Assembly: GCA_047495785.1 (NCBI GenBank)
Contig: JBLDXI010000028.1
Location: 1,178,001-1,242,000, forward strand
Origin: Lepidodermella squamata
Taxonomy: Eukaryota > Animalia > Gastrotricha
Length of the DNA stretch: 64,000 bases
Reading direction: 5' to 3'
Positions within the stretch are counted from its first letter, which is position 1; each line of letters opens with the position of its first letter. Shown one piece after another: positions 27,848-46,900 of this stretch. The notes under the pieces were generated by a model. It ran no database searches, was not told where the DNA came from, and saw only the letters and a list, made by a program, of their open reading frames with translations. A program made the translations under genes and the position numbers.

Positions 27848-30800
27848 ATGTCAGCTGTTGAGAAAAAGCTGTCAAACTTGTCAAACCGTAGAAGTGGTCC
27901 CAGCGCAGACCAAGCTTTTAATCATGATACCGTCAATAGGCTGAAATCTTCGCCTTTGCTGGGCTTTTCCACCTTCTCCGAGTTTCTTCAGCGAACTCAT
28001 GATGTAGAAGTTTGGCGAAAAGGAAAATTCGAGGGCCGTTACAAAGTGCGATTTGCACATGACTGTGGCCTTCTTCTTTTCTTCAGTGATTCATTTGTAG
28101 AATACCCGAAGCTGGCGACGCTAAAAATTCCCACTCACTCCATTCAGGAAGTCAGAGCTGGGGGCAAAGATGTTCGAGACATGCCTGAAGGGAAAAATCA
28201 GCGAAATTGTTTTGCTATTTACTACGACAGCAAGTTCAACCTGCAAACGATAATCGTAGTCGTTGAAAGCGAGGACCTCCAATACAACTGGGTTCATGGT
28301 CTGACCCAGCAGATGAATTTAGTAAAGCAGATGAAGCGAGCTGATTACGTAAAGCAGTGGCTCACGGCTGAATTCATCCACCTTGTCTCAGGACCAGATT
28401 ATTCGCAAATCACTCAATCGCGATTGCTGAAAAACTTCTTTACACATATCCCCTATTCCAGATGGATATCTCAGCAGCCTAGCGTGCGCAACGGCGTTAG
28501 TCTATTGTGGAATGACTTTCATCGCTTGTTCTACGAGCTGCTTCACATCCCCCAAAATGGATTTCCGTCATTTCGTGAACTGTTTGGCGCTCATGATCAG
28601 ATGACGCCTGAAATTTTCAAATCATTCCTCGATAAAAACAAATCTCGAGTAGGCAGCACTTCAGATCTTACCGGCTTGTTAACTTATTCTCAATCACTGC
28701 CTGACGTATCAGCCCTTGGTCGATTTGTTCACAAATACGACTTTTATGACTACCTCTTCAGTCCGATGAATTCCATTTTCGACGATGAGTGCAATCGCGT
28801 CTACCAAGATATGGAACAACCACTGTCAAACTACTTTATTTATTCGTCTCACAACACGTATCTAACTGGCGACCAGTTGAATTCAGAATCTTCCGTTGAA
28901 TGTTACATCAGATCGTTAAGAATGGGCTGTCGCTGCATTGAGTTAGATTGTTGGGATTACAAGGGCGAAATCGTCATTTACCACGGCCACACTCTGACGA
29001 GTAAAATTCGTTTTGTCGACGTTTTAGAGGCGATCAAGTTACACGCTTTCGACACATCTGATTTTCCTGTTATTCTATCAATTGAAGATCACTGCAGCGT
29101 TGCCTCGCAGAAAATCATGGCGGACCATTTTAAATACATCTTGGGCGACTTATTGTTGACCTCGCCAATCGAACCAAACGAAAAAGTTTTACCATCGCCG
29201 AATAAATTGAAGCGAAAAATAATTATAAAGCACAAAAAGTTGCCGGATTTTCCTGAAGAACAGCCGAAAAATTACGATGTGAATCGCCAGAATAGCACCA
29301 GTGGCGAAGAGTCAACTATTGAAGATCGAGATTCGATTGTTGGAACTTATGTTTTGTTTCTCGAGGATCCATTGCGACAAGTTTGGCGTGATTACACGGC
29401 CGTTTTACGGGCTGGCCGTCTAGAATGGGCCGAGGTCGTTCAAACACCGGCCGAGGAAGAAAATTCCGATGACAATGACACTTCAATTCAGGACGATGTG
29501 TCCCAAGAAATTTTCTACCACGGCCCGTTGCGCTTTGCCGAGGCTAAAAATGTGATTAAAAACGCCGGTAAGGGCAACGGGTCGTTTCTACTGAGAGACA
29601 GCGAACGTCAACCAGGCGATTTTACCATTTCTTTCCTATACTCTGGCGATGTTTACCACGTTCGAGTTTCATGCAAACGAGCTGCTGATGGCTCGCCCAA
29701 ATATTCGCTACACGCTGATCGGACTTTTTCATCGATTTTCGAGCTCATTGAATACTACAAGAAAGCTCCGATTCAATCGAAAGAATTTTGCCAACTTTTA
29801 ACCGTCCCAATTCCGGTTGTTGATCACTTCGATGAACAGCCGTGGTTTCATAGTGATTTGTCGCGAAGTCAAGCCGAGCAGGTGATTCATTTCATCGACG
29901 ACGACGGGGCGTATTTGGTGCGTAGGCGCAATTTGATGCCGAATGACGAGGGTGATCGGCCGTTTGCCATCACATTTCGAGTTCGCGGCTGCATCCGTCA
30001 TTGCCATGTTCATTACAACAAAGAATCGATGACTTACGAATTGGGCGGCGTTGAAATGCCGGCGCTTAGCCATTTGATATCGTATTTCGGCCGCCACCCG
30101 TTGTACAAAGGCCAGAAGCTGGTGAGGCATATCACGACGTTGGAAGCGAATCGCTGCTTGCAAATTTTGCAAATGTCCGCTAATGGCAATGCGAGTTCGG
30201 GCGCGTACTACGTGCCGGTTAATTCGGTTTGCCGGGCTAAGGACGACTATCGACCGTCGAGCGTGCAAGGCGGCGGTTTTGCTGGCTTCTTCCGCGGAGA
30301 CATCATCACACGTAAGCAATATTTACCCTCAAAGCCTAAGTTTTAGCTTCCAGTTTGATCGTGAAATTCAATGACAGGCGCATCTTTGAGCCAAAGAACT
30401 AACTAAGAACGAATTTTTCTTGTTGGGTCTGTTTAATTTTTAGATTAAGATTTCCGTAATAATTTAGGAATCCAGGAAACTGTTTGCCCGTAAGCCTAAA
30501 ACTGTAATATTTCTTTTTCAAAAACTAAATTGTTGCTGATAAAATTGAGAAATTGCGATTCCAGACTTATTTTTATTAATTGTGGGCTTTGCTAATAAAA
30601 AGAAAACTTCCACAGAATTTCTAAAATGCTGAATTTGAAGTATTGAAGTCTATCGCTCTTAGTTTTAGCATCTATTTTGGATTTTCGAAATGTTATCGGA
30701 AGAAAAAGTGATGAATCTATTTTATTTATAAAGGGAGAAAATATTAGAATGTAACCTTGGGCTATAATGCTTTCATTTTTATGATTTCTCAATCGGAAAT

Positions 30801-33800
30801 TTAAAGCCTCAAATTTACAGCGAAAATTTCGCCATAATTTAGCTCGGGGAAACGCGCCGAAACACTTTTTCATTTCTCGAATTTCGATAAATTTGAAAAT
30901 TTTGAACGCACATTTGCCAACAATTTTAGCTTTATTTTTCCGTCCTCTATATTGACCTCATTTATTGCCCCATTGTTGTTACTTCTAATCACGAATTGAC
31001 AATTATTTGACTACAATTTTTTGGACCTTCGTAATATTAGAGGCCTAAACAATTTTCATTCCCGTATAAATGCGTCATTTTTAACGAGCGATAATGCCGT
31101 TTTATTAAAATCACGATCTTATCTCTTAGATTTTGCGTTGTTTTCATGTTCGAAAACGCAATTATCATGGCTAATTTTTCTTGTTTCTTATTTTGCTGCT
31201 CCCCCGCTGCTCTCGACAGATGTGGATATGAATTTCGTCGGTGATATGTGGAGTGGCGAGTTTGGCGGGCAGAAGCACGTGACATTTCCGCGCGCCAAGG
31301 TCGAGCCCATCGACGTGCAGGTGGTACAGCGGCAGCGCGCCAGCATCAGCCTCGACAGATGTTCATTCAGCGGCGATATCAAGTGGCACAACGGCAAGGT
31401 GAACGTGGTCGCGATTCAGGGCGCGACCGAGGCGGACGAGCCTTCAATCTACGTGTCGTTTGCGAAGCCGGAAGATAAGACCGATTTTACGAACAAATTG
31501 CAGCTATGCATGCGCTGGCTGAAGGAAGAGGCCACGAAAAAAGGTAAAAAAAAGTGGAGTTTAAATGAAAAAAATGAATCATTGATTAGTCACAAAAAAA
31601 CGAATTTTACGCCCATTTTATTCCGATAAAATTAATTAAAACAAAATTTTGATTGAGCTGTAAATGGTTTGCAGTGATCGGTCAGACTTTTCAACAGTGG
31701 CATATCGTGAAAAATTCGATGTAAAGTCACTCAGGTTGTGGACGAAGATACCTAGATCCGGTGCTTACGGGGGTTATAAATGATGATAAATTGAAAAAAT
31801 GGCTCAGTTATCGTTAGCGCAAGTGTTGTAGGACGATTTATTTTTAATTTTTGTCGTTTTTTCTTCTTATTTTAGGCGATGTCGAGTCGAAGAAGCAAAT
31901 AGCCCGTGAACTGTCTGATTTGGTTGTGTACTGCCGAGCCGGGCGCGGATTTCCCAAGGAAAATTTCCGCCTGCCCGACTGTAAAGACATGTGTTCATTT
32001 GTCGAGAATAGAGCCAGCGTAATGTGCGGCCCGACCAAAGTTCGCCAAATGCTGGAATTCACCATGGAGCATCTTGTCCGCGTCTATCCAAACGGATTCC
32101 GCATCCAGTCCAGCAATTATGGTAAATTTTGTCTCATATTTGTGGTTCATAGTTTCAATATGAAATGATATTTTTCATTTGTTCTTGAATTTTAATCAAA
32201 ATATTTTTTAGCGAAACACAAATTTAAATCTTGACACTTCATTTTTTATATTCTTTCGTTGAGTCATGATTACGTTGTGTTCTCAAAGTGAGATGATCAA
32301 TTTATGTTAATTTATTTGGATTTTATATGCGCGTTTTTGAACAACACAACATATAAGCTTTATTTTGATATCTGAATCATTGAAATCCGAAAGTTCTACG
32401 TCGACTATGGAAGCAGCTACAGCTTTTTGAATAGAACTAGTAAAAAAAGCGAAAAATGAGCAGGCAGAGGAGAAGAGAAAACTGCTAATGAAATGTGCTT
32501 TGCGAACCATAAAAATGCAAATGAAAAAGAGGCAAAAAGTGAACAAGTCACGATATTGATGACAGTTTTGCAATGACATTAAATTCGGTATCTGATTTTT
32601 AAATCGTAACAGGGTGATATCGATAAGAAAAAAATTGAGATTTTAAGGTGGATATTGACTTAAAACCATATTTTTGTGAAGTTAAGCGCTGGAACCGTAA
32701 ATTTAGACAGTTCACTTGTCTTATTGAATATTTCGAAAAAATATCAATTTTTTTAGCGTCAAATGTGATTGAAACATGAGTTTTTTTCTCAATTTTTCAT
32801 TTTATTGCTAATTTTCCAGACCCGTTTTTTGTATGGCTCGCCGGCGCGCAAATGGCGGCACTGAATTTCCAAACCGCGGATAAGCCGCGTCAAATCAACG
32901 ACGCGCTGTTCTTCGACAACGGCCGTTGCGGCTACGTGCTGAAGCCGCAGTTCATGGCCGACCCGCGCTATTCGCCGTTCAACGTGCCGAGCCAAGACTT
33001 TGAGACCGAGTGCCTGAAGCCGGTTAACGTCAACCTGGTCATCCTAGCCGGGCGGTTGTTCCCACGCCGCGGCACGGCGTCGAGCCCACGAGTTGAGGTT
33101 GAAGTCATCGGCTGCCCGTACGATATGAAAACGAACGGCGGTGGGGTGAAGAATTTTTTCGGCACGAAACCGGTTCGCAATTCGTTTTGCCCGGTTTGGA
33201 ACGAACGCGTGTACTTTGAAGTTCGAAATCCTGATTTGGCCCTGCTGCGATTTTCGGTTGTTGAGGTCAACGATTTCGGGGACAATCGGCTACTAGGGCA
33301 ATTCACGGCTCGACTTCGCTGCCTGCGTCAAGGTAAATTTTCTTGAGTTTTTCTATGGTGATGGAATTGATGGATTGATAAACAAAGGAAAATCTGTCTT
33401 GAAGGAAGTGGTTCAGTCCTACCTGAAGTTGAACCTAAACTTGAATTTTTAGGCAGAAGGGGAATTGAGTTGGGGTTGGGTTGGTAGTAGGCGGGTTTTG
33501 GGTGGGGTTAACTGGGTATATTGTCAAATTTGGCGTTTCTTTTGTCAAATTCATCGCAAAACGTCTCAATACAGTCTGTTTTTAATATTAAAAATCCGGA
33601 GAGCTGAAACCAGCTGAAAATGGGAATATTAAGGAGGCGTGGGCGATAGGTGCCGTAGTCGTTACCGATGGCGGCACCGTAGGTCGATGTAATAGCAGAA
33701 ATATCGTTGGGCTAGCGCATGAAGAGCAGTAGGTTGTTCTGACGAGCGACGAGATCACGTTCGAGCACGAAAAGGAACGCGTCGGCTACGGCTGGGACGC

Positions 33801-34299
33801 TGTTGAAACCGAGTGGAAATAGAGTGGAACTGTTATTAGTCTCGAGGAATTTCATCCAACAGACATTTCTGCTGACTTGAATTAAAATTGAAAATTAATT
33901 TGAATTAATATTCAATCGAAATTACAAGAATTTGAATATTTACCTCAAATTTTGGTGTGAATTTATTGTTCAAAGAATCTAATTTTATATTTTCAATTTT
34001 TAGGGTTCCGCTCTGTGCCGTTGCGCAACGAATTCGGCGAAACGATACCTATGGCCTCCCTCCTGATCGAACTGAACATTCAACCGCGAGACGTACCCTA
34101 CGACGAGAGTCTCTACTCGGCCATACCGATGTTTGTCAGCCAAGAAACGCTGAGTGGCCAACTGAGCACGTCGGATTCGGGCGTATTCAACCCAAGCATC
34201 ACCAGCCAACAACAACAACAACAACCACAACAACAACAGCAATCTGTTAACTACAGCCCTAGCATCTCGAGCCGATCGAGCCGGGGCAATTTTCGATAA
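27848..34299 (+). CDS. PLCG: Phospholipase C-gamma (PH, EF, X, SH2-SH2-SH3, split PH, Y, C2; polyQ tail)
   Basis: Exons 27848-30311, 31220-31543, 31876-32121, 32820-33332, 34004-34299; SSHNTYL, GCRCIELDCWD, IYHGHTLT, FLLRDSE, ELSDLVVYC, RVYP..SSNYDP, ALNFQT, GYVLKP; GAYYVPVN at the Y783-like position. Confidence 0.93.
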
Positions 34300-34972
34300 A
34301 AATAAATTATTGATAACTAAATTAACCCATTTTTGTGAAAAAATAATAATCTCTAATTTTAATTAGGAAATTTAGGGAATTTTATGTGAATAATCTCGAA
34401 TATCGCCAAATTCTTGTAACTTATTTCATCGAAAAAATTGAACAACGAAAAATTTGACCAAAAATTTAAAGATGAACAACCCGTGTCTTCCTATTTTTCA
34501 TTCCGAACAATTGAAAAAAATATTTTAATTATTATATATGGCTATTATATAAAGTTTGTGAAAGGTACTGTGTGATATTGTGCTATGTATATAATCAAGC
34601 AATAAAAATGTTAGGTGCATTTTATACTTGCAATAGAAACTTATGTAACGCTTGCCCAATTTTTCACTGGCTACTTTTCTTCCTTCGAATTTTATAACCT
34701 GCTGTTCTTCCATAAATTTCGGCTGCTATTTGTTGCGAACTGCTGCTATTTTTATCGATAATTTTATTGTACTGCATACTATGATGAAGAGGTAGAAAAT
34801 TTTAATAAAATTCGAGTATGTCACAGGATAACAGATGCGTTTTTTACGTGCCTAATCGCTGAATCGAGGGTATAATTTTATTCGACTCGTCATAGTCGCA
34901 TGACGTCATGCGTGACCCTGAATTTCAACTATTTAAAGGTGCGAGTCAAAAAATAACACAACGAACAAAATA

Positions 34973-35350
34973 ATGACTTCGGCTTTGAAAAATCTAGCGA
35001 ATTGTCGGCGGCGATGCGAGGGCGCAACTTACTACCACGGTCCAATGAATTGCGCACAGGCCGTGGAGATTTTGCGAAATAGCGGCCGAGGCGATGGGTC
35101 ATTTTTGGTGCGCGACAGCGAACGACGGCCTGGTGATTTGACGCTGTCATTTATGCACAAAAATGCCGTTTATCATATCCGAATTTTCGGCAGGGCGCGG
35201 TGCTACTACATTCATGGCGAGCGGTCGTTTGTCTCGATTTCACGGTTGATTGATCACTACAGGCGAACGCCGATTCAAAGCGTTAAAGTTGTTCAAATTC
35301 TTACGCATCCTATTTCGAGTATACACGAAAATCTCTATTGCGAGTTGTAG
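34973..35350 (+). CDS. Single-SH2-domain protein with C-terminal ENLYCEL tyrosine motif
   Basis: Intronless 125-aa ORF: YYHGPM, GSFLVRDSERRPGDLTLSF, VYHIRI, FVSISRLIDHYRRTPI; TATTTAAA upstream and AATAAA downstream. Confidence 0.85.
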   Translation: MTSALKNLANCRRRCEGATYYHGPMNCAQAVEILRNSGRGDGSFLVRDSERRPGDLTLSFMHKNAVYHIRIFGRARCYYIHGERSFVSISRLIDHYRRTPIQSVKVVQILTHPISSIHENLYCEL

Positions 35351-35958
35351 ACAGGACTTTCAGTTGGACCTTAGTTTCTTGAAATAACAGTTTCATGTGA
35401 TTGCCAATTTAAAGGTAATAAAATCTCTATCGGTCATATCATTTTTTTTGGATCCATTGTGATCATAGAATTCCTAAAGCCATACAGGACGCATGCCTCC
35501 ATTTTCGAAAAATGTCGAATTTCCTATTTAAAACTTTTCATCAATTCTTCGGGGTTTCGAACCTACGGGGAAACATAAATCTATAATTTGTTATTTCGAG
35601 CATATTGTGAAAAATGCCGATACCAGCAGAAAGTGAGACTAATTCCTTGAGACTAATTCATCCCTATGGATTTTTGCGGAACCCTGTAACATCGAGCTGC
35701 AAAAAGGTTCAGAGCTCCTTTATGCAACGACCAAGGCGACGCTCATTCGGAGCATTTGCAACATGAAGGGTTTTTTATTAAGTTTAAAAATTGTAATTAA
35801 TGACGTCACAATCCAGCTGTTATATTCCGTATTGCGTAACAGAGTTGAGCAGATAACGAAAAAAATGTGTTAACACAAACCACAATGATGAATTCGAACC
35901 CGTTCGGGAAATCTATTATTTCTCTGTGTAAAGCTTTTTTTATTTTATTTCCATCATC

Positions 35959-38846
35959 ATGTCGGTTCTTGAAGCAGTAAATTCTTGCCCGAATCTTGAA
36001 GAAACTGACAAGAAGGCGTTGGTTAAACGTTTGCAAGGTGAGCAATTAATTTGAGGCCAGAGGTTTAATAAAAAATGGCCTAATTTGCGTATTCATTTTT
36101 TTATTCAGAAGAGGAAGTTTCTCTAAGCGTATTACAGATGATGACTGAGGAGGAATTGAAGAAAACCTTTCCGAAATTTGGCTGGCTCTGTTCCGCCAAG
36201 TGTCTCATCGGCCACCTTAAGAAGAGATCAGCAGTGAGTGAATTAGTTTCCAATAAATTATTTCATTTCGCACGATTTTTGTCCGCAAATAGACCACCAA
36301 GAAACCATTGCTATCTCCTTCAAAGAAGCGTGAATGGGTGTTTGACGTGGACAAAATGAAGATCGACTCGAGTGTCTATTACGAATTGACGGAATGCGAG
36401 CAGAGGTTGATGTGTACGTATTCAGCGTTTTGCAGTTACGCCGCCGAGGCGTTGATCGAACAGAACCCGCTCGAAGCTGGGCAGGAGTACGATCGCGAGA
36501 CTTACAGCGTTATGGTGACGGCCATCAACGAAAAGCTCAACCAATTATTCCAATCGGACATACAAAAGGTAAGGTCTCTACTAAAGTCTCTTCTAAAATA
36601 ATGTTTCCGAAAACATGATCAACACTGATATTAAATTTTAAATTATTTTATGATGTTACCTATCTATATTTATATTTTCAAGAAGTTTGAGAATTTGTCG
36701 GAAATCAAGATTGAGGGCTAAAAATGAGGGAGAATTTTCGGAAATTTAGAAATATGGAGAAATTGGGCTTTTCATAATTTTCCATTAATTTCCAATTCCT
36801 TGACAATTCCTGACCTAATCGACCCTAAAAATACCCGACATTTAATCGGATCGAATTCGATAGAATTAAAATCGATGAGCCAGTGCTGCAGAAGTTTTTT
36901 TGGAGATTTCTCTCGAATTTCGGTCTATCCACAAAATCGGATAGACCGAAATCACATTGTAAGTTCCGGAATTTGGTTGTCGAGAAAGACTCTTCAGCAG
37001 AAGTTTTTCAGCCCTGTTTGAATTGCTTTAAGCTAGAGCGTAATGAAACCAAAGGAGCTCCGAACTTCTCAGGATAAAATCGATCAGTTCTTCGGGCTGA
37101 GAATTGACCGAGGCTGGAAGGGAGGGAGGGGGCATGTTCAGTTTCCAGGTTTACGACTCGGCTTGCTCGTTCCTTGGGAATGAAAATGGCAGAAAGCCGC
37201 CGCTGCGTCTGCATGAGACTTCGTTTTTGAGCCATGTAGGACACATTCATTTTCTGAGCCGCATTTTTTCGTTGAACTGAGTAGACGCTGTGACACGAAA
37301 ATTTAGTGCTTCGTTGAACTAGGCGATTCCGATCGATTGCTATGGTTTCGTTTGCGAGTGAGAAAAATAGGGTCATCACGTAACGGGATAATTCATGACC
37401 TTTATCAACCAGCAAGTCATGGTGGTAGAAGAGTGGGTTCTTTTCACGCGCGACCGGCTGACCATCGGGTTGCAGCATTGACGGGACTTCTGCTGCTGTA
37501 TATCATCGGCTTCATATGTCAATGCGTGAAGCGTATCATTAGGCGCGACGGGCATTGTTGGAAGTTTTGCAGTATTGCTAAAGGTTTCGAAGCAGCAAGC
37601 TTCCAGTCGACTCTGGTTTTGAGTTTCATTTCAGGGAATACCGTTCGACCCTCTCCCATAACTTGGCCGTTGAGAGTTTTGCAGCTGATTGCAGCTGATT
37701 TTGAAAGATCACTTGATCCATCGCTTTTTTCATTATCAGTGTGATCCCATCGATCCCGCCGATTGCTTTCGCTGACCTGCAAATCGAGGCATCGATAGGC
37801 CGTATTTTCCTGTAGGAAGAAGGATTTTAAATAGCAACAGGAGCGAGGCAGTTTTTGAGCCGCGATTTCTTGAGGCGTAATTGTTCGTTGAACTGAATTG
37901 GAGCTGTTTCGAAATAATTGATTGATCCAAGTGATTCGGGCGGTTGCAGATAGTAGCCAGTTCGGAAGTTCTTCGAGTGTGGAAGAGGTTTCCATTCGAT
38001 ACAAAAGGTTCGTAATATGTGGCGGTGGTAGTGGCGGCTAACTCGTTCCAGAAGACTCAGTCCAATTCAAAACAGAACTTGAACGCCGCTTTATAGTTAA
38101 TTTATGAAATTAAATTAAATAGTATAACTGGGTCCCCACAAAGTAGGGAACATTTAGTAAAAGGCTAAGAAAAAGGCTTCAAATTAAACGCTTCAAAGCA
38201 GCAAGGTCTCCATGTAAATTAAAAATAGGCTTCGAAGTAAAATTAACGTCATAAACGAGATAAATTAACACGTGTTAAACCAAGGCTGCTTAATAGTGGT
38301 GGCATGCAAGTTGTGACTTTTGTGATGCAATTAGGACACTTTTTGAGGTGCGCAACCAAGTGGAACATTTTTTATTTGCTTGCTTTTTAATTTATTTTAT
38401 TGAGATTTAAGGCCTACGTAAGTGATAAGGCTATCAAGGTATGTAACGAAATCACATGGCTTTTCAATACACAATTTTGCAATCGGACTTTATTCTGCGA
38501 GCGCCGCTTTTTCACATTCGTTTCACAAAATCTAAATTATTAGTCACTTATCAATTTTTCAAATTTGCAATTTTAGGCGAAATTTCGTGAAGACGTCTCC
38601 GAGCGCGTGCAATATCGACTGCGTTGCAAACGCCAAGGCAAGCAGACCAGATTCCAGGCGAGAAAATCAGCCACTGGCGCGAGACAAGTTGCTCACCAAC
38701 CAGGTCCATCACCTTCAAAAATGAAGCGGCCCTCGTCGTTGAAAGTTCACGGAACTATGAGTGAGATTGGAAGCTCTTTCAAAAGCAGCGAATTTTTTCT
38801 CCGCATCAAAAACATGAAAGAAGACGATGATGATGAGGAAATTTGA
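35959..38846 (+). CDS. SAM-like domain protein, about 249 aa, with basic/acidic tail
   Basis: Phase-consistent exons 35959-36037, 36109-36233, 36293-36568, 38577-38846; EEVSLSVLQMMTEEELKKTFPKFG resembles a SAM core. Confidence 0.6.
37000..38050 (-). mobile_element. Possible decayed retroelement (BEL/Pao-like?) in an intron
   Basis: Broken ORFs 37008-37478 and 37519-38004; LLSATARITWI..RTITPQEI weakly recalls the Pao RNaseH-integrase linker. Confidence 0.2.
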
Positions 38847-39012: not shown

Positions 39013-41309
39013 ATGCTGCTTTTCCTTGCATTTTTACTGTTAATTTTTTCGAACTCTCACGCGAAAAAAGTTGTGACTACAGCGCAGTGTATCGAGGGTG
39101 TCAACATACCAATCACCGAATGGTCGCCCGGATTCACCTATGGCACCTACCCCTACAACACCATACAGACGTATTATTTCGTCTCGGAGCCGAGGACCTG
39201 TATTAACATAACCTTCAGATTATTCGACCTTGAAACCAGCCCAGGTTGCGTCAAGGACTACGTGGCGATCTACGACGGCGCCAGCACCCAGGCCCCTCGC
39301 CTCGCCCGGGCTTGCGGCGCGTCTTTGACCTCAGTTAAATTATCATCCCGCAACGCATTGACGCTTGTCTTCAATAGCGATGCCGAGGGAAGTAACGGGC
39401 GTGGCTTCGAGGCTGAATTACTGGCGTTTCCTTGCGATTTTCCGGCGAAAGGGTCGCGAAATTTTGACGATAGTTTGCCGTTGCCGCGGTGTATTGGCAC
39501 GGTTGTTACGAATAAGCATGCGACGCTGGCAACGCCTGGTTTTTCGACCGGATCTTACCCGTTAAATGTTCACAAAACTTACCTGATTGTATCAGCCAGT
39601 TTCACGTGTATTCAGCTGAGACTGAAAAGTGAGTTTAAAATTTTTCCCTGGTCAAAACACTTCAACAAGGAATTGGAAATAAATTGTCTAAAAAATTATC
39701 ATTAATTTTATAGATTTTAGACATTTTTTCCTGCTGACTGTTCCATGTTTACCTGTATTGAAATTTCGAAAATCTCAATAATAAATAATTTTTCAAATTT
39801 TTGAAAAAAGTCGAAAAATGACCAATTTCAGAAATAGCACCAGGGGATCCTGCCCACGAAATTAATTTTTTTACGTCTAATTAAATTATTATAAATTCCA
39901 GGATTTTTCCGGTGAAGCTAGGTCAAGTGCGCTTCCGATTTTTTTCCTTTTTTCTCTGATTTTTTCAGCAAAAAAATTTAATTGAAATAAAAAGAAAAAT
40001 CCTTTTACCCCTCAAAATTATGGGTTGAAATAATCTTTAAGGTGGAACATTTTCTTATAATTTTGTAGCTGTTGAGCTTGAGAGCAGTCAAAAGTGCTCG
40101 AAGGACTATTTCGCAGTCTACGACGGCACCAACCCTAGATCGCCAACAAAACTGGTCACCTGCGGAACGTATTACCGATCGCGCCAACTCCCTGAACCGG
40201 TTCAAACGTCGAGCAATGTCGTTTTTCTGGTTTTCCACAGCGATGAAAATTATGCGAATGGCATCGGGGTAGAGGCTGAACTGTCGGTGATACATTGCCG
40301 GCGATCCCATAGTGAACCTATTCCAAGCAATATTACACCTAGACGTAAGTTCCATTGGAGGAAATTGAAAATTATGACAATTCTTTTGAATTTTCTAGAA
40401 CTCATTTATAGCGCGCAAAATGCTAAACCAACTTGTGGAGAGCCATTTTACGACCCAGCCGATCCCCTAGGACGGCCGAAGGGTGCCGATGAAACCTACG
40501 CAATACCCCATTCGTGGCCTTGGCATGTCATGATTCGACTCAAGTTCTTAAACTTTTCATAATATCGTACAATTTAAAAAAAATTAATTTTTCAGTGGGG
40601 TACATATTTGCGACGGAATCTTAATTTCATTCCGAGCAGTGTTGACCGCAGCTCATTGCTTCAAAATATTCGCCGAAGATCCAATCAGCTTCGAATTATG
40701 GCTAGGCAAGCATTACAAAGACGGCGCTTACGAAAGCGGCCGGGAGCAACGCATCACCCCACTATCGATCACCCTGCACCCGAACTACACCCGTTTTTTT
40801 CACTACAACAATGACCTGGCAGTTATTCGCCTAGCAGCGCCCGGCGTGAGACAGACAACGGTTGTCCAACCGATTTGTTTGCCGAAGGTTGATAAGGCTG
40901 AAAATTTCCCGCCGCACGGCAGTCATTGTATGGTTGTTGGGTTTGCGAAAAATGACCCGGTAACTATGCGGCTCCCTCTGAAACAACTCAATACAACAGT
41001 TTTCTACTCACAAGAATGCTCCTTGATGGATTCTTCTATGGGGGTAATTTTTAGCTCACCTTCCGTTGGATGAATTTGAATATTTTAATTTATTTTAATT
41101 AGCCACTTTTGAACTCCGGCTTGTTATGCGGCAATTCGAAAAACGGCTGCGATTTCTGCCAAGATGGAGCTGCGCTAATGTGCCGGCAAAACGAAAGCTG
41201 GTACCTCGCTGGAACCCTTCTGTACGGCTTCGACTGGAACCCATCGTCCCAAGCTGTTTTCGTTAGAACGTCCAGTCATATTGCATGGCTTCAGAAAAAC
41301 GCTAATTAA
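39013..41309 (+). CDS. CUB-CUB-trypsin-like serine protease homolog (ovochymase-like), catalytic Ser motif absent
   Basis: Signal peptide; CUB motifs SPGF..YP, FDLE..CVKDYVAIYDG, FNSD..GF; exons about 39013-39628, 40069-40344, 40399-40543, 40596-41043, 41103-41309; SWPW, LTAAHC, NDLAVIRL, PICLP; CQDGAALMC in place of GDSGGP. Confidence 0.85.
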
Positions 41310-43960: not shown

Positions 43961-46900
43961 CTACACTACGACTTCATAGCGCACCCTGCGATTCTGGCCG
44001 GTCGGATCCGGCGTTTGGCAAGCATTTAGCTGTTGCTGATTGTACGGCGTTATCAACGGCCCAGACGACGAGTGATCACTGTGGTTGTCAGCAACAGGTT
44101 GCTGCTGTTGCTGCTGACATATTCGTCGCAAAACCGCGGTTAGATCTTCATTCCCGTTACCAGGAACTATGCCCGAATCATCCACGCCATGGATGACTGC
44201 GGATTCGGTTGAGGCGGTCGACGATTGCGACCAGCCGTTCATTTGGTAGTGATGCGGCACGAACGACGAGGCGAGGTGGTGGTGGTACGTATGGCCATGC
44301 ACTAATTCGGACATATCCAGCGGGCTGGAACCGGAGCCGGAACTGTGTTGCTGAACCGTGACTACAGAATCAATCGCCGCGTAGCACCCGCCCGACCCGG
44401 CTGACAGCAGAACAGGCTTCGTCGACCCGTCATCGGAGCCGCGGCTCGACGTGCCCGAACTTATTGCTCGGTTGTAGTCTTTATCGCGCGAAATCGCCGC
44501 CTTCCGCCGCCGGCAGACTACGATAATCGAGACCAGGAGTAAGATCACCGTCGCTGCAATGCCAGCCGCTACGCCGAGGATGAGTGCCTGGGTCGAGAGG
44601 AGCCCGGGCGATGACACCCCTTCATGCGCATCGAACGGGTCGAATTTCGCCGGGTCGAAGGTGGATGCCTGGGCTGAGACAAGGCCGGTGCACTGCTTCG
44701 GCCTGTCCGTCACGCATAGCTGAACAGCAATTGCGACAGCGCCCACTGACCACGATCCTAACGAAATGACGCCCTTCCTCGCCGGAACGCAATCGTCAAG
44801 CCACGACCAACTACGGCCGGCGTCTAGCGTTTTAGCCACCCGAACGCATAGCCTCGCATCGGCTGGGCTCAACTGCAGGGCGTTTGCGAATGGGTTGAAA
44901 AAAACATCGCGCGGTTCGGTGAGATTAGGGGTCGAAAACCGGGCGACATCCCCTGACAACTCGCCCGCGCCGTGTTGGTTAACGCCGCGTAGGTGAACCT
45001 CGTAACTCGAGCCAGGCAGCAAATCTGTGATGTTCAACTCATGCGTAGCCGTTTCTTCGACATCTTCGATAATCAACGCGTCGTTATCTTCAGTCAAACC
45101 GATCATTCCGAGAATTTTCGCGCTCGATGGCTTCAGCTGGACGGTGAATGTTTTGATCGGTAACTTTTCGGTTTCGTCCATTTCCGGCTTTTTCCCGACT
45201 TCAAACACGTGAACTTCGATCGATTGCGGCGATCCGCCGTCGAAGCCCGGCCGCCAGGTCAGTTTCGCCGAGTCCCAACTGGTGGAAATAGCTGAGAGCA
45301 CGCGAGGCGCATCTGGGACGCCTGGTTCGACCAGTCTCAGGATGGTATCGCTAGTTCGGCCTTGGTCGTTTTCGGCGCGGATTGTGTACAGGCCGAAGTC
45401 TTTATCCGAGACTTGGTGGATGACGAGTTGAGATTCGAAGACTTCACGCCTCGTTGAACCACGTTCGGTGACGAAATAGCGACCGGACGTGTTCGAGATG
45501 TGATTACCGTCCTTGGACCAGTAAAAACGCGGTTTCGAAGCGGAATAGACAAGGAATCGAAGCCTGGCAGACCGGCCCATGGTCGCCGAAAATTTCGAAA
45601 AAGTCGTGATCGGCACAGGAGGATCTGAAATATTAAAAAATAATTTATAATTTTATTTTCAAATAACTTTCAACATTTTCACGACGGGCTGAAATTGCTC
45701 ATTTCAAAATTATTTTTAAATTTAAAATTTTGAATTTCAGAAAAAAAAATTAATTTTAAAAAACTTTAATTTAACTTTATCAATAATGATCAAATTTTGG
45801 GTTTTCAATTTCATTTTTTAAAGATTTGAACTTACAAAGAACAGTGACCGTCGTTTGGCTGGTTGACACGCCCAATTTGTTCTCAGCTTTACACGAATAC
45901 AGGCCCGAATCGTTGCGGCCGAGACCGTTGTGCGAAAACCTCAGCGACGATTCGATTTGAAACAACCCTCGCTTCATAACCGGATCAGCCGTAACAATCG
46001 TGTACTCTTCAGGAATCGCAATGCTGTTAGCCACCTTGTGAGTATCTTCCACGAATGAATGGCCATTTCGTTGCCAGGTGACAACTGGAGCTGGATTGCC
46101 GGCAGCAGTGCATGTCAACGTGAAATCTTGCGCCTTCCACAACGGCCGTTGGCTGTGGACGAGGGGTGTCACCCAACGGGGTTGTTCGTGAACGACAAGG
46201 GTGACAATGGCCGGGGTGCCTCGGCCGTACTTGTTTTCAGCCAAGCATTCGTAGAGACCAGCAACTCGTTCAGCAGCGACGTTTTCCATGCGAAGCTCAG
46301 CAGTTGTGCCCGAGCTACGGCCGACAGCTGATCGAGAGTGGCTGGTTTCAGAGTTATCGGGTAACCGGTACCAAGAGACAGTACCACCTGGGTTGCCGAG
46401 ATCGTCGACTTCGCAGAATAGGCGAACAGATTCTCCGGCGGCGACCGTTACAACAGCCCCATTGGTGATACGGGCCTTGCCGGGTGGGTACAAAACATCA
46501 ATTTCGACTTGTTTGACATCGCTGCCTTCTTCAGATTCGACCTTGGTTGAAACGCCGGGAGATGACTGGATAAAACAATAACATCATTATTATCAAGAGG
46601 ATCCAAGGCAGATCAAAGGCAGATCAAAATATATTCGGTTCAAAATAAGGACCAGGTGGATCAAGATCAGAATCAATTTCAGATCAGATTTGGATCAAAA
46701 TTTGTAATTTGATCTAAACCAGAATCAAATTCAGATCAAAGATTGATCAATTTCTCAAGTTTGATCAACTACCGGATCAATTGCTCAATTTCAGATCAAA
46801 ATTCATTTTTGATATTTCTTTATATTTACCTGGTAGACCATGGTGTTTCGAGCCTCACAGGCGTAAACTCCAGCATCTTTCCGCGAAACCGGTTCAACAG

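Follow-up and report, generated by a model that had tools for sequence, protein, structure and literature searches.

The single-SH2 adaptors SAP and EAT-2 (SH2D1A/SH2D1B) are immune regulators of vertebrates, and isolated SH2 fragments of PLC-gamma are used as experimental dominant negatives, which compete with the enzyme for the phosphotyrosines of receptors. The EAT-2 phosphotyrosine pY127 (pYVDV) binds the N-SH2 domain of PLC-gamma, and the consensus for ligands of the PLC-gamma SH2 domains is pY[V/I/L][E/D][L/I/V] (PMC3978279). A literature search for a natural SH2-only gene derived from PLC-gamma found nothing relevant. The locus considered here lies in a 64,000-nucleotide stretch of Lepidodermella squamata DNA, which was analyzed whole and is called the window, and in our judgment it is probably an intronless gene, kept by selection, that encodes a free-standing SH2 protein and arose by partial tandem duplication of the N-SH2 segment of the neighboring PLC-gamma gene; its product would compete for docking sites. 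The parts of the ORF and of its neighbor are as follows.

34973-35350, + strand: SH2-only ORF, 125 codons plus a TAG stop, single exon (ORF reading, Pfam, composition)
34973-35026, + strand: the 18 N-terminal residues of the ORF, without PLC-gamma counterpart, a low-confidence helix in AlphaFold2
35027-35317, + strand: SH2 domain of the ORF, residues about 19-115, with the Pfam core at residues 20-96 (Pfam, BLASTP, AlphaFold2, Foldseek)
35111-35113, + strand: codon of Arg47 (betaB5), in the FLVRDS motif
35318-35347, + strand: C-terminal tail of the ORF, residues 116-125, ending in ENLYCEL, predicted to be disordered
35336-35338, + strand: codon of Tyr122 in the tail
27848-34299, + strand: PLC-gamma gene (Pfam, reading of exons)
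27848-30346, + strand: large first coding exon of PLC-gamma, 832 codons, with PH, X box, N-SH2, and C-SH2
29513-29821, + strand: PLC-gamma N-SH2 (the parental type), residues 556-658, inside the large exon
about 34004-34299, + strand: last exon of PLC-gamma, with a poly-Gln tail and a TAA stop

A reading of the letters alone had described an intact ORF some 670 bp downstream of PLC-gamma that aligns with its N-SH2, and both points hold: from ATG to TAG the 125 codons contain no internal stop, the ATG lies 673 bp past the PLC-gamma stop codon on the same strand, and BLASTP against the 832-residue exon aligns the ORF with the N-SH2 at 46 identities in 103 positions (71% positives, E = 4e-32), while the C-SH2 reaches only 22% identity (E = 1e-4). 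Chance does not account for a likeness of this size. The Y box and C2 domain of PLC-gamma are on exons after the large one, and its C-terminus carries a poly-glutamine run of CAA/CAG repeats (window 34200-34245) just before the stop. In the ORF, Pfam SH2 (PF00017) matches over model positions 1-77 of 77 with 73.6 bits (E 1.4e-20), where the curated cut-off is 21 bits, and this ranks fourth among about 28 SH2 matches in the 121-Mb genome. Only SH2-type models match among those of Pfam, and the PI-PLC X and Y boxes are absent. The locus is single copy in its own genome, which rules out a repeat or transposon origin. An exact-protein look-up found no public record of the 125-residue protein, and a word search found no close relatives of similar length.

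The AlphaFold2 model of the protein, built on an alignment of 113 sequences (pLDDT 86.6, pTM 0.80), predicts a canonical helix-sheet-helix arrangement with pLDDT above 90 over residues 21-110, a low-confidence helix at residues 2-14, and disorder in the last residues, and with this model as the query Foldseek returns a probability of 1.0 to many solved SH2 domains, the best PDB matches being human PLCG2, then the p120RasGAP N-SH2 and PLCG1. The predicted model thus has the alpha-beta-alpha fold of an SH2 domain. The motifs previously pointed out (YHGP, GSFL(V/L)RDSER.PGD, VYH, PIQS, Q.LT.PI, and the terminal ENLYCEL) are all present, with the segment PIQS...Q.LT.PI common to the ORF and the parental N-SH2, and the phosphotyrosine-binding arginine is indeed kept, as Arg47 (betaB5) in FLVRDS. 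Other retained pocket residues are Ser49, the ERRPGD phosphate loop, and His68 (betaD4) and Arg70 in the VYHIRI strand. The alphaA2 arginine is replaced by Cys27, which is no sign of decay because P0016, a metagenomic PLC-gamma described below, also lacks an arginine there. Five residues after the betaD strand are missing from the ORF, whose 18 N-terminal and 10 C-terminal residues have no counterpart in PLC-gamma.

Several searches bear on where this domain came from. Within the 121-Mb genome, the neighbor's N-SH2 is the best match to the ORF (100 bits; 45-46% identity), followed by an Abl-type SH2 at 44 bits. Among 1.84 billion representative proteins an exhaustive HMMER search gave no match below 1e-30, and in per-domain scores over the same proteins the N-SH2 of the own PLC-gamma reaches 95 bits, that of P0016 69 bits, and all others at most 59. 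P0016 is an 809-residue metagenomic PLC-gamma exon that has the same big-exon layout as the PLC-gamma of the window and is 46% identical to its exon over 792 residues, with about 55% identity in the part that covers PLC-gamma residues 480-832. FastTree, a quick IQ-TREE run, and a careful IQ-TREE run (LG+C20) all return the topology (ORF,(own N-SH2, P0016 N-SH2)), with support of 99/96 for the three-row clade and 100/95 for the own and P0016 pair, nested among PLC-gamma N-SH2 domains. Nine derived residues, among them the proline in YHGP and the Ile-Gln in PIQ, are common to the three domains compared with other PLC-gamma N-SH2 domains. Among the short SH2 proteins that the profile word search brought up are several EAT-2 sequences, which form a separate clade (100/99), and RasGAP-like and SHP2-like fragments are placed elsewhere, away from the ORF. 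Orthology of the ORF to the SH2 domains of SAP/EAT-2, RasGAP, SHP2, Grb2, or Abl is ruled out by the trees. These tree results therefore favor descent from the PLC-gamma N-SH2 and disfavor orthology to a known SH2-only family, which is the outcome that had been anticipated for an SH2 phylogeny, and by these comparisons of aligned residues the ORF, an SH2-only protein, descends from the PLC-gamma N-SH2 of this lineage and belongs to neither the SAP/EAT-2 family nor any other short SH2 family found.

The idea that the ORF was copied from the adjacent N-SH2 stands as to descent, with the qualification that the copy is not recent. The best trees and five alignment sites put the duplication before the split from P0016. 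At those five sites the ORF retains what most other PLC-gamma proteins have and the own and P0016 N-SH2 domains share a derived state, although two sites point the opposite way; the AU test does not reject the alternative tree, which pairs the ORF with the own N-SH2 (p = 0.24, on 38 rows). The duplication probably predates the divergence of the own PLC-gamma from P0016. By the measures of divergence the copy is old: similarity to the parent at the DNA level is a single 62-nt stretch at 71%, identity at third codon positions is 0.41, and dS is saturated (2.8 by NG86, 8.8 by ML) with dN at 0.48. No homology outside the SH2 domain (the PH half, the linker, or the C-SH2, in any frame) was found between the flanks of the ORF and PLC-gamma, so DNA duplication and a retrocopy are indistinguishable, and the intronless state of the ORF is equally uninformative on the route because the parental segment itself sits in one exon.

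A clear orthologue of the ORF was found neither among representative proteins nor in metagenome scans. Two such scans, with alignments of the N-SH2 and of the C-SH2, yielded no orthologue and no syntenic locus, and the four contigs that carry P0016 all end about 150-860 bp past the big exon. A profile word search limited to short proteins did bring up two candidates, each a stand-alone ORF that has a tyrosine among its three C-terminal residues: P0151, of 155 residues, on an ENA metagenome contig (L040:193-660) with a GC of 0.37, equal to that of the P0016 contigs, and P0152, of 177 residues, on a JGI contig (L041:1534-2067) with a GC of 0.25. Both join the clade of the ORF, the own N-SH2, and the P0016 N-SH2 at 99/97, and in this genome the PLC-gamma N-SH2 and the ORF are the sole matches to P0151. 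Their pairwise scores are low (30-36 bits), their branches long, and their placement has an AU p of 0.475. We regard the pair as a lead and not as orthologues, one which hints at a greater age and a wider spread of the SH2-only design. Taken further, the ORF could belong to an old, fast-evolving family of stand-alone proteins that derive from the PLC-gamma N-SH2 and carry a C-terminal tyrosine; gastrotrich-like micro-animals would have this family in common, P0151 and P0152 would be distant members of it, and the ORF would then be a genomically linked regulator of PLC-gamma docking, whether a decoy or an EAT-2-like bridge, independent of the vertebrate SAP family; we hold this wider reading to be possible but doubtful. 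Two long ORFs beside P0151 (L040:828-4798, - strand) are 37-39% identical, with E down to 1e-110, to a family in this genome that has at least 40 copies of an ORF of about 1,400 codons (for example C31:785417-787312 and C28:1967654-1969459, outside the window). One segment of this ORF is weakly like endonuclease VII, and the family is probably a large transposable element shared with the metagenomic organism of P0151.

One important consideration is whether the ORF is transcribed by itself. The candidate signals around it are these.

34898-34911, no strand assigned: perfect 14-nt palindrome with the CRE-type octamer TGACGTCA, candidate promoter element (sequence inference)
34930-34937, + strand: TATA-like TATTTAAA, 36-43 bp 5' of the ATG (sequence reading)
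34937-34938 and 34944-34945, + strand: AG dinucleotides, possible splice or trans-splice acceptors
35417-35422, + strand: AATAAA, candidate poly(A) signal, 67 bp past the ORF stop (sequence reading)
35801-35808: second TGACGTCA octamer, 450 bp 3' of the ORF, where no gene is recognized

The TATA-like and polyadenylation strings that the sequence-only reading had put forward do exist at these sites, but the DNA is A+T-rich and they are therefore weak evidence. The palindrome sits 19 bp upstream of the TATA-like string, and the two copies of its octamer in the 64-kb window both lie beside the ORF, a number reached or exceeded in 11 of 100 shuffles. Further downstream, a 97-residue open frame (window 36308-36601, + strand) of protein-like composition and without a Pfam match lies between the ORF and the next recognizable gene, in which an exon for a CUB domain (Pfam 4e-16) precedes exons for a trypsin-like serine protease (window 39013-41073, + strand). 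A 551-residue open frame on the - strand (window 43961-45616) resembles a transmembrane receptor of the Ig/FN3 type whose cytoplasmic tail is rich in Gln.

It is unlikely, in our estimate, that the ORF is instead part of a longer transcript, either as an alternative 3' exon of PLC-gamma that uses the AG at 34937-34938 or at 34944-34945, or as the downstream cistron of an operon resolved by SL trans-splicing. Such a transcript would account for the common strand and the position 673 bp past the PLC-gamma stop, and the reading frame continues without a stop for 12 codons 5' of the ATG, where the AG dinucleotides lie. However, these acceptor candidates (AAAG, GAG) have no T-rich tract with TAG/CAG like the one at the acceptor of the last PLC-gamma exon, the spacing is long, and PLC-gamma has its own stop (TAA, 34297-34299) with AATAAA directly after it. 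The ATG of the ORF, moreover, stands in an A-rich context with no upstream ATG past the TATA-like string, and the distant relatives P0151 and P0152 are stand-alone ORFs.

A comparably small chance attaches to the possibility that the protein acts mainly as an adaptor of the EAT-2 kind, in which the SH2 domain would dock on a phosphorylated receptor and phospho-Tyr122 would recruit PLC-gamma through its N-SH2. The design is suited to this, with one SH2 domain and a short tail, predicted to be disordered, whose tyrosine in ENLYCEL stands four residues from the C-terminal end, and the glutamate at -3 and leucine at -1 of Tyr122 are residues that we take to suit Src/Abl-type kinases. The tail had been called a new C-terminal tyrosine motif, which agrees with its having no counterpart in the parent and no homology to the inter-SH2 linker. 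A separate proposal, which would derive its tyrosine as a remnant from the WFH with which the C-SH2 begins, is supported by no alignment and was set aside. Compared with the PLC-gamma ligand consensus (PMC3978279), YCEL fits at +2 and +3, two of the three positions, while the cysteine at +1 is off consensus, so that YCEL as a ligand of a PLC-gamma SH2 domain is suggestive, being one tyrosine in one sequence. The possible kin P0151 and P0152 have a tyrosine in the last three residues, a likeness noted post hoc. Against a mainly adaptor role, the tail is just 10 residues long, and its tyrosine is a feature of a single sequence.

The sequence-only reading had called the ORF diverged but free of stops and had named dN/dS as a check, and four independent features of the ORF clearly point to long-term purifying selection. 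The first is pairwise omega between the ORF and the parental N-SH2, which is 0.05-0.3 with dS saturated. The second is the open frame itself: in simulations of neutral decay that start from the parental segment and ignore indels, the proportion of stop-free copies falls from 6.6% to 0.16% at 15-44% changed sites (a probability of no stop of 0.066 to 0.0016). The third is composition, with a GC of 0.49 and a GC3 of 0.51 in the ORF, like those of PLC-gamma exon 1, as against 0.30-0.37 in both flanks; coding-type trinucleotide use over this stretch is found in frame 0 only. The fourth is an independent SH2 profile, built without the ORF, the parent, and P0016, which gives 107 bits for the ORF and 89 bits for the parent. 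When the parent was made to drift neutrally, without stops being allowed, until it had reached the same 46% identity, 400 such copies scored 14 +/- 8 bits (maximum 40), and therefore nearly all substitutions in the ORF are ones that the SH2 fold tolerates. Although no annotated or recorded protein and no clear orthologue was found, it is quite improbable that the ORF is a relic without expression, left over from a partial duplication and still open by chance, as an unconstrained copy would stay open in only 0.2-7% of simulations even with indels ignored, would score about 14 bits on the profile where the ORF has 107, and would have dropped in GC to the level of its flanks. The ORF might still have died very recently; with no clear orthologue and no readable syntenic locus, the four features speak to long-term constraint and not separately to selection on its own branch or to present-day activity.

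The reading that we prefer is thus that of a maintained SH2-only gene acting on the docking of its neighbor. A partial, domain-level tandem duplication of the PLC-gamma N-SH2 coding segment would have occurred in the lineage of Lepidodermella squamata, and the freed SH2 domain would recognize the phosphotyrosine docking sites of the enzyme's N-SH2, or similar ones. Because the protein has no catalytic or other domain, it would act mainly as a competitor, by analogy tuning the recruitment of PLC-gamma to activated receptors. In a secondary role, phospho-Tyr122 in the tail might also recruit another SH2 protein, PLC-gamma included, as EAT-2 does. Within a spiralian phylum that has been little studied, a natural gene of the SAP/EAT-2 design apparently arose from PLC-gamma itself and was kept by selection beside its parent; if expressed, it would be a clean case of the birth of a regulator through domain-level duplication and a simple system for learning how a freed SH2 domain tunes its source enzyme. 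The value of the finding hinges on expression and on orthologues in other gastrotrichs.

Among known systems, PLC-gamma itself is the closest relative of the ORF in both sequence and structure, and it has the phosphotyrosine pocket and the BG-loop segment in common with the enzyme of this lineage. In contrast to that enzyme, the ORF encodes a free 125-residue protein without PH, X/Y, C-SH2, SH3, or C2, and it differs as well in the deletion after betaD and in its new N- and C-terminal extensions. The p120RasGAP N-SH2 is the second-best match to the ORF among structures and among PDB sequences, at 40% identity, whereas the RasGAP-like SH2-SH3 proteins P0025, P0103, and P0141 lie at path lengths of about 2.8-3.0 from the ORF, compared with 1.1 for the own N-SH2. 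SAP and EAT-2 have the same size and design as the ORF, one SH2 domain with a short tyrosine-bearing tail, but they are not its orthologues: EAT-2 sequences are 33-40% identical to it and match the search profile with E of 1e-6 to 1e-7, no SH2D1 entry is among its best 60 PDB sequence matches, and the tail reads YCEL where that of EAT-2 reads YVDV. By its sequence relationships, the ORF would be a genuine lineage-restricted SH2-only gene that came to a SAP/EAT-2-like design from an independent origin. Finally, the mechanism proposed for it is the one by which dominant-negative PLC-gamma SH2 fragments work, with the difference that those fragments are laboratory constructs and the ORF would be a natural, selected counterpart encoded in the genome.
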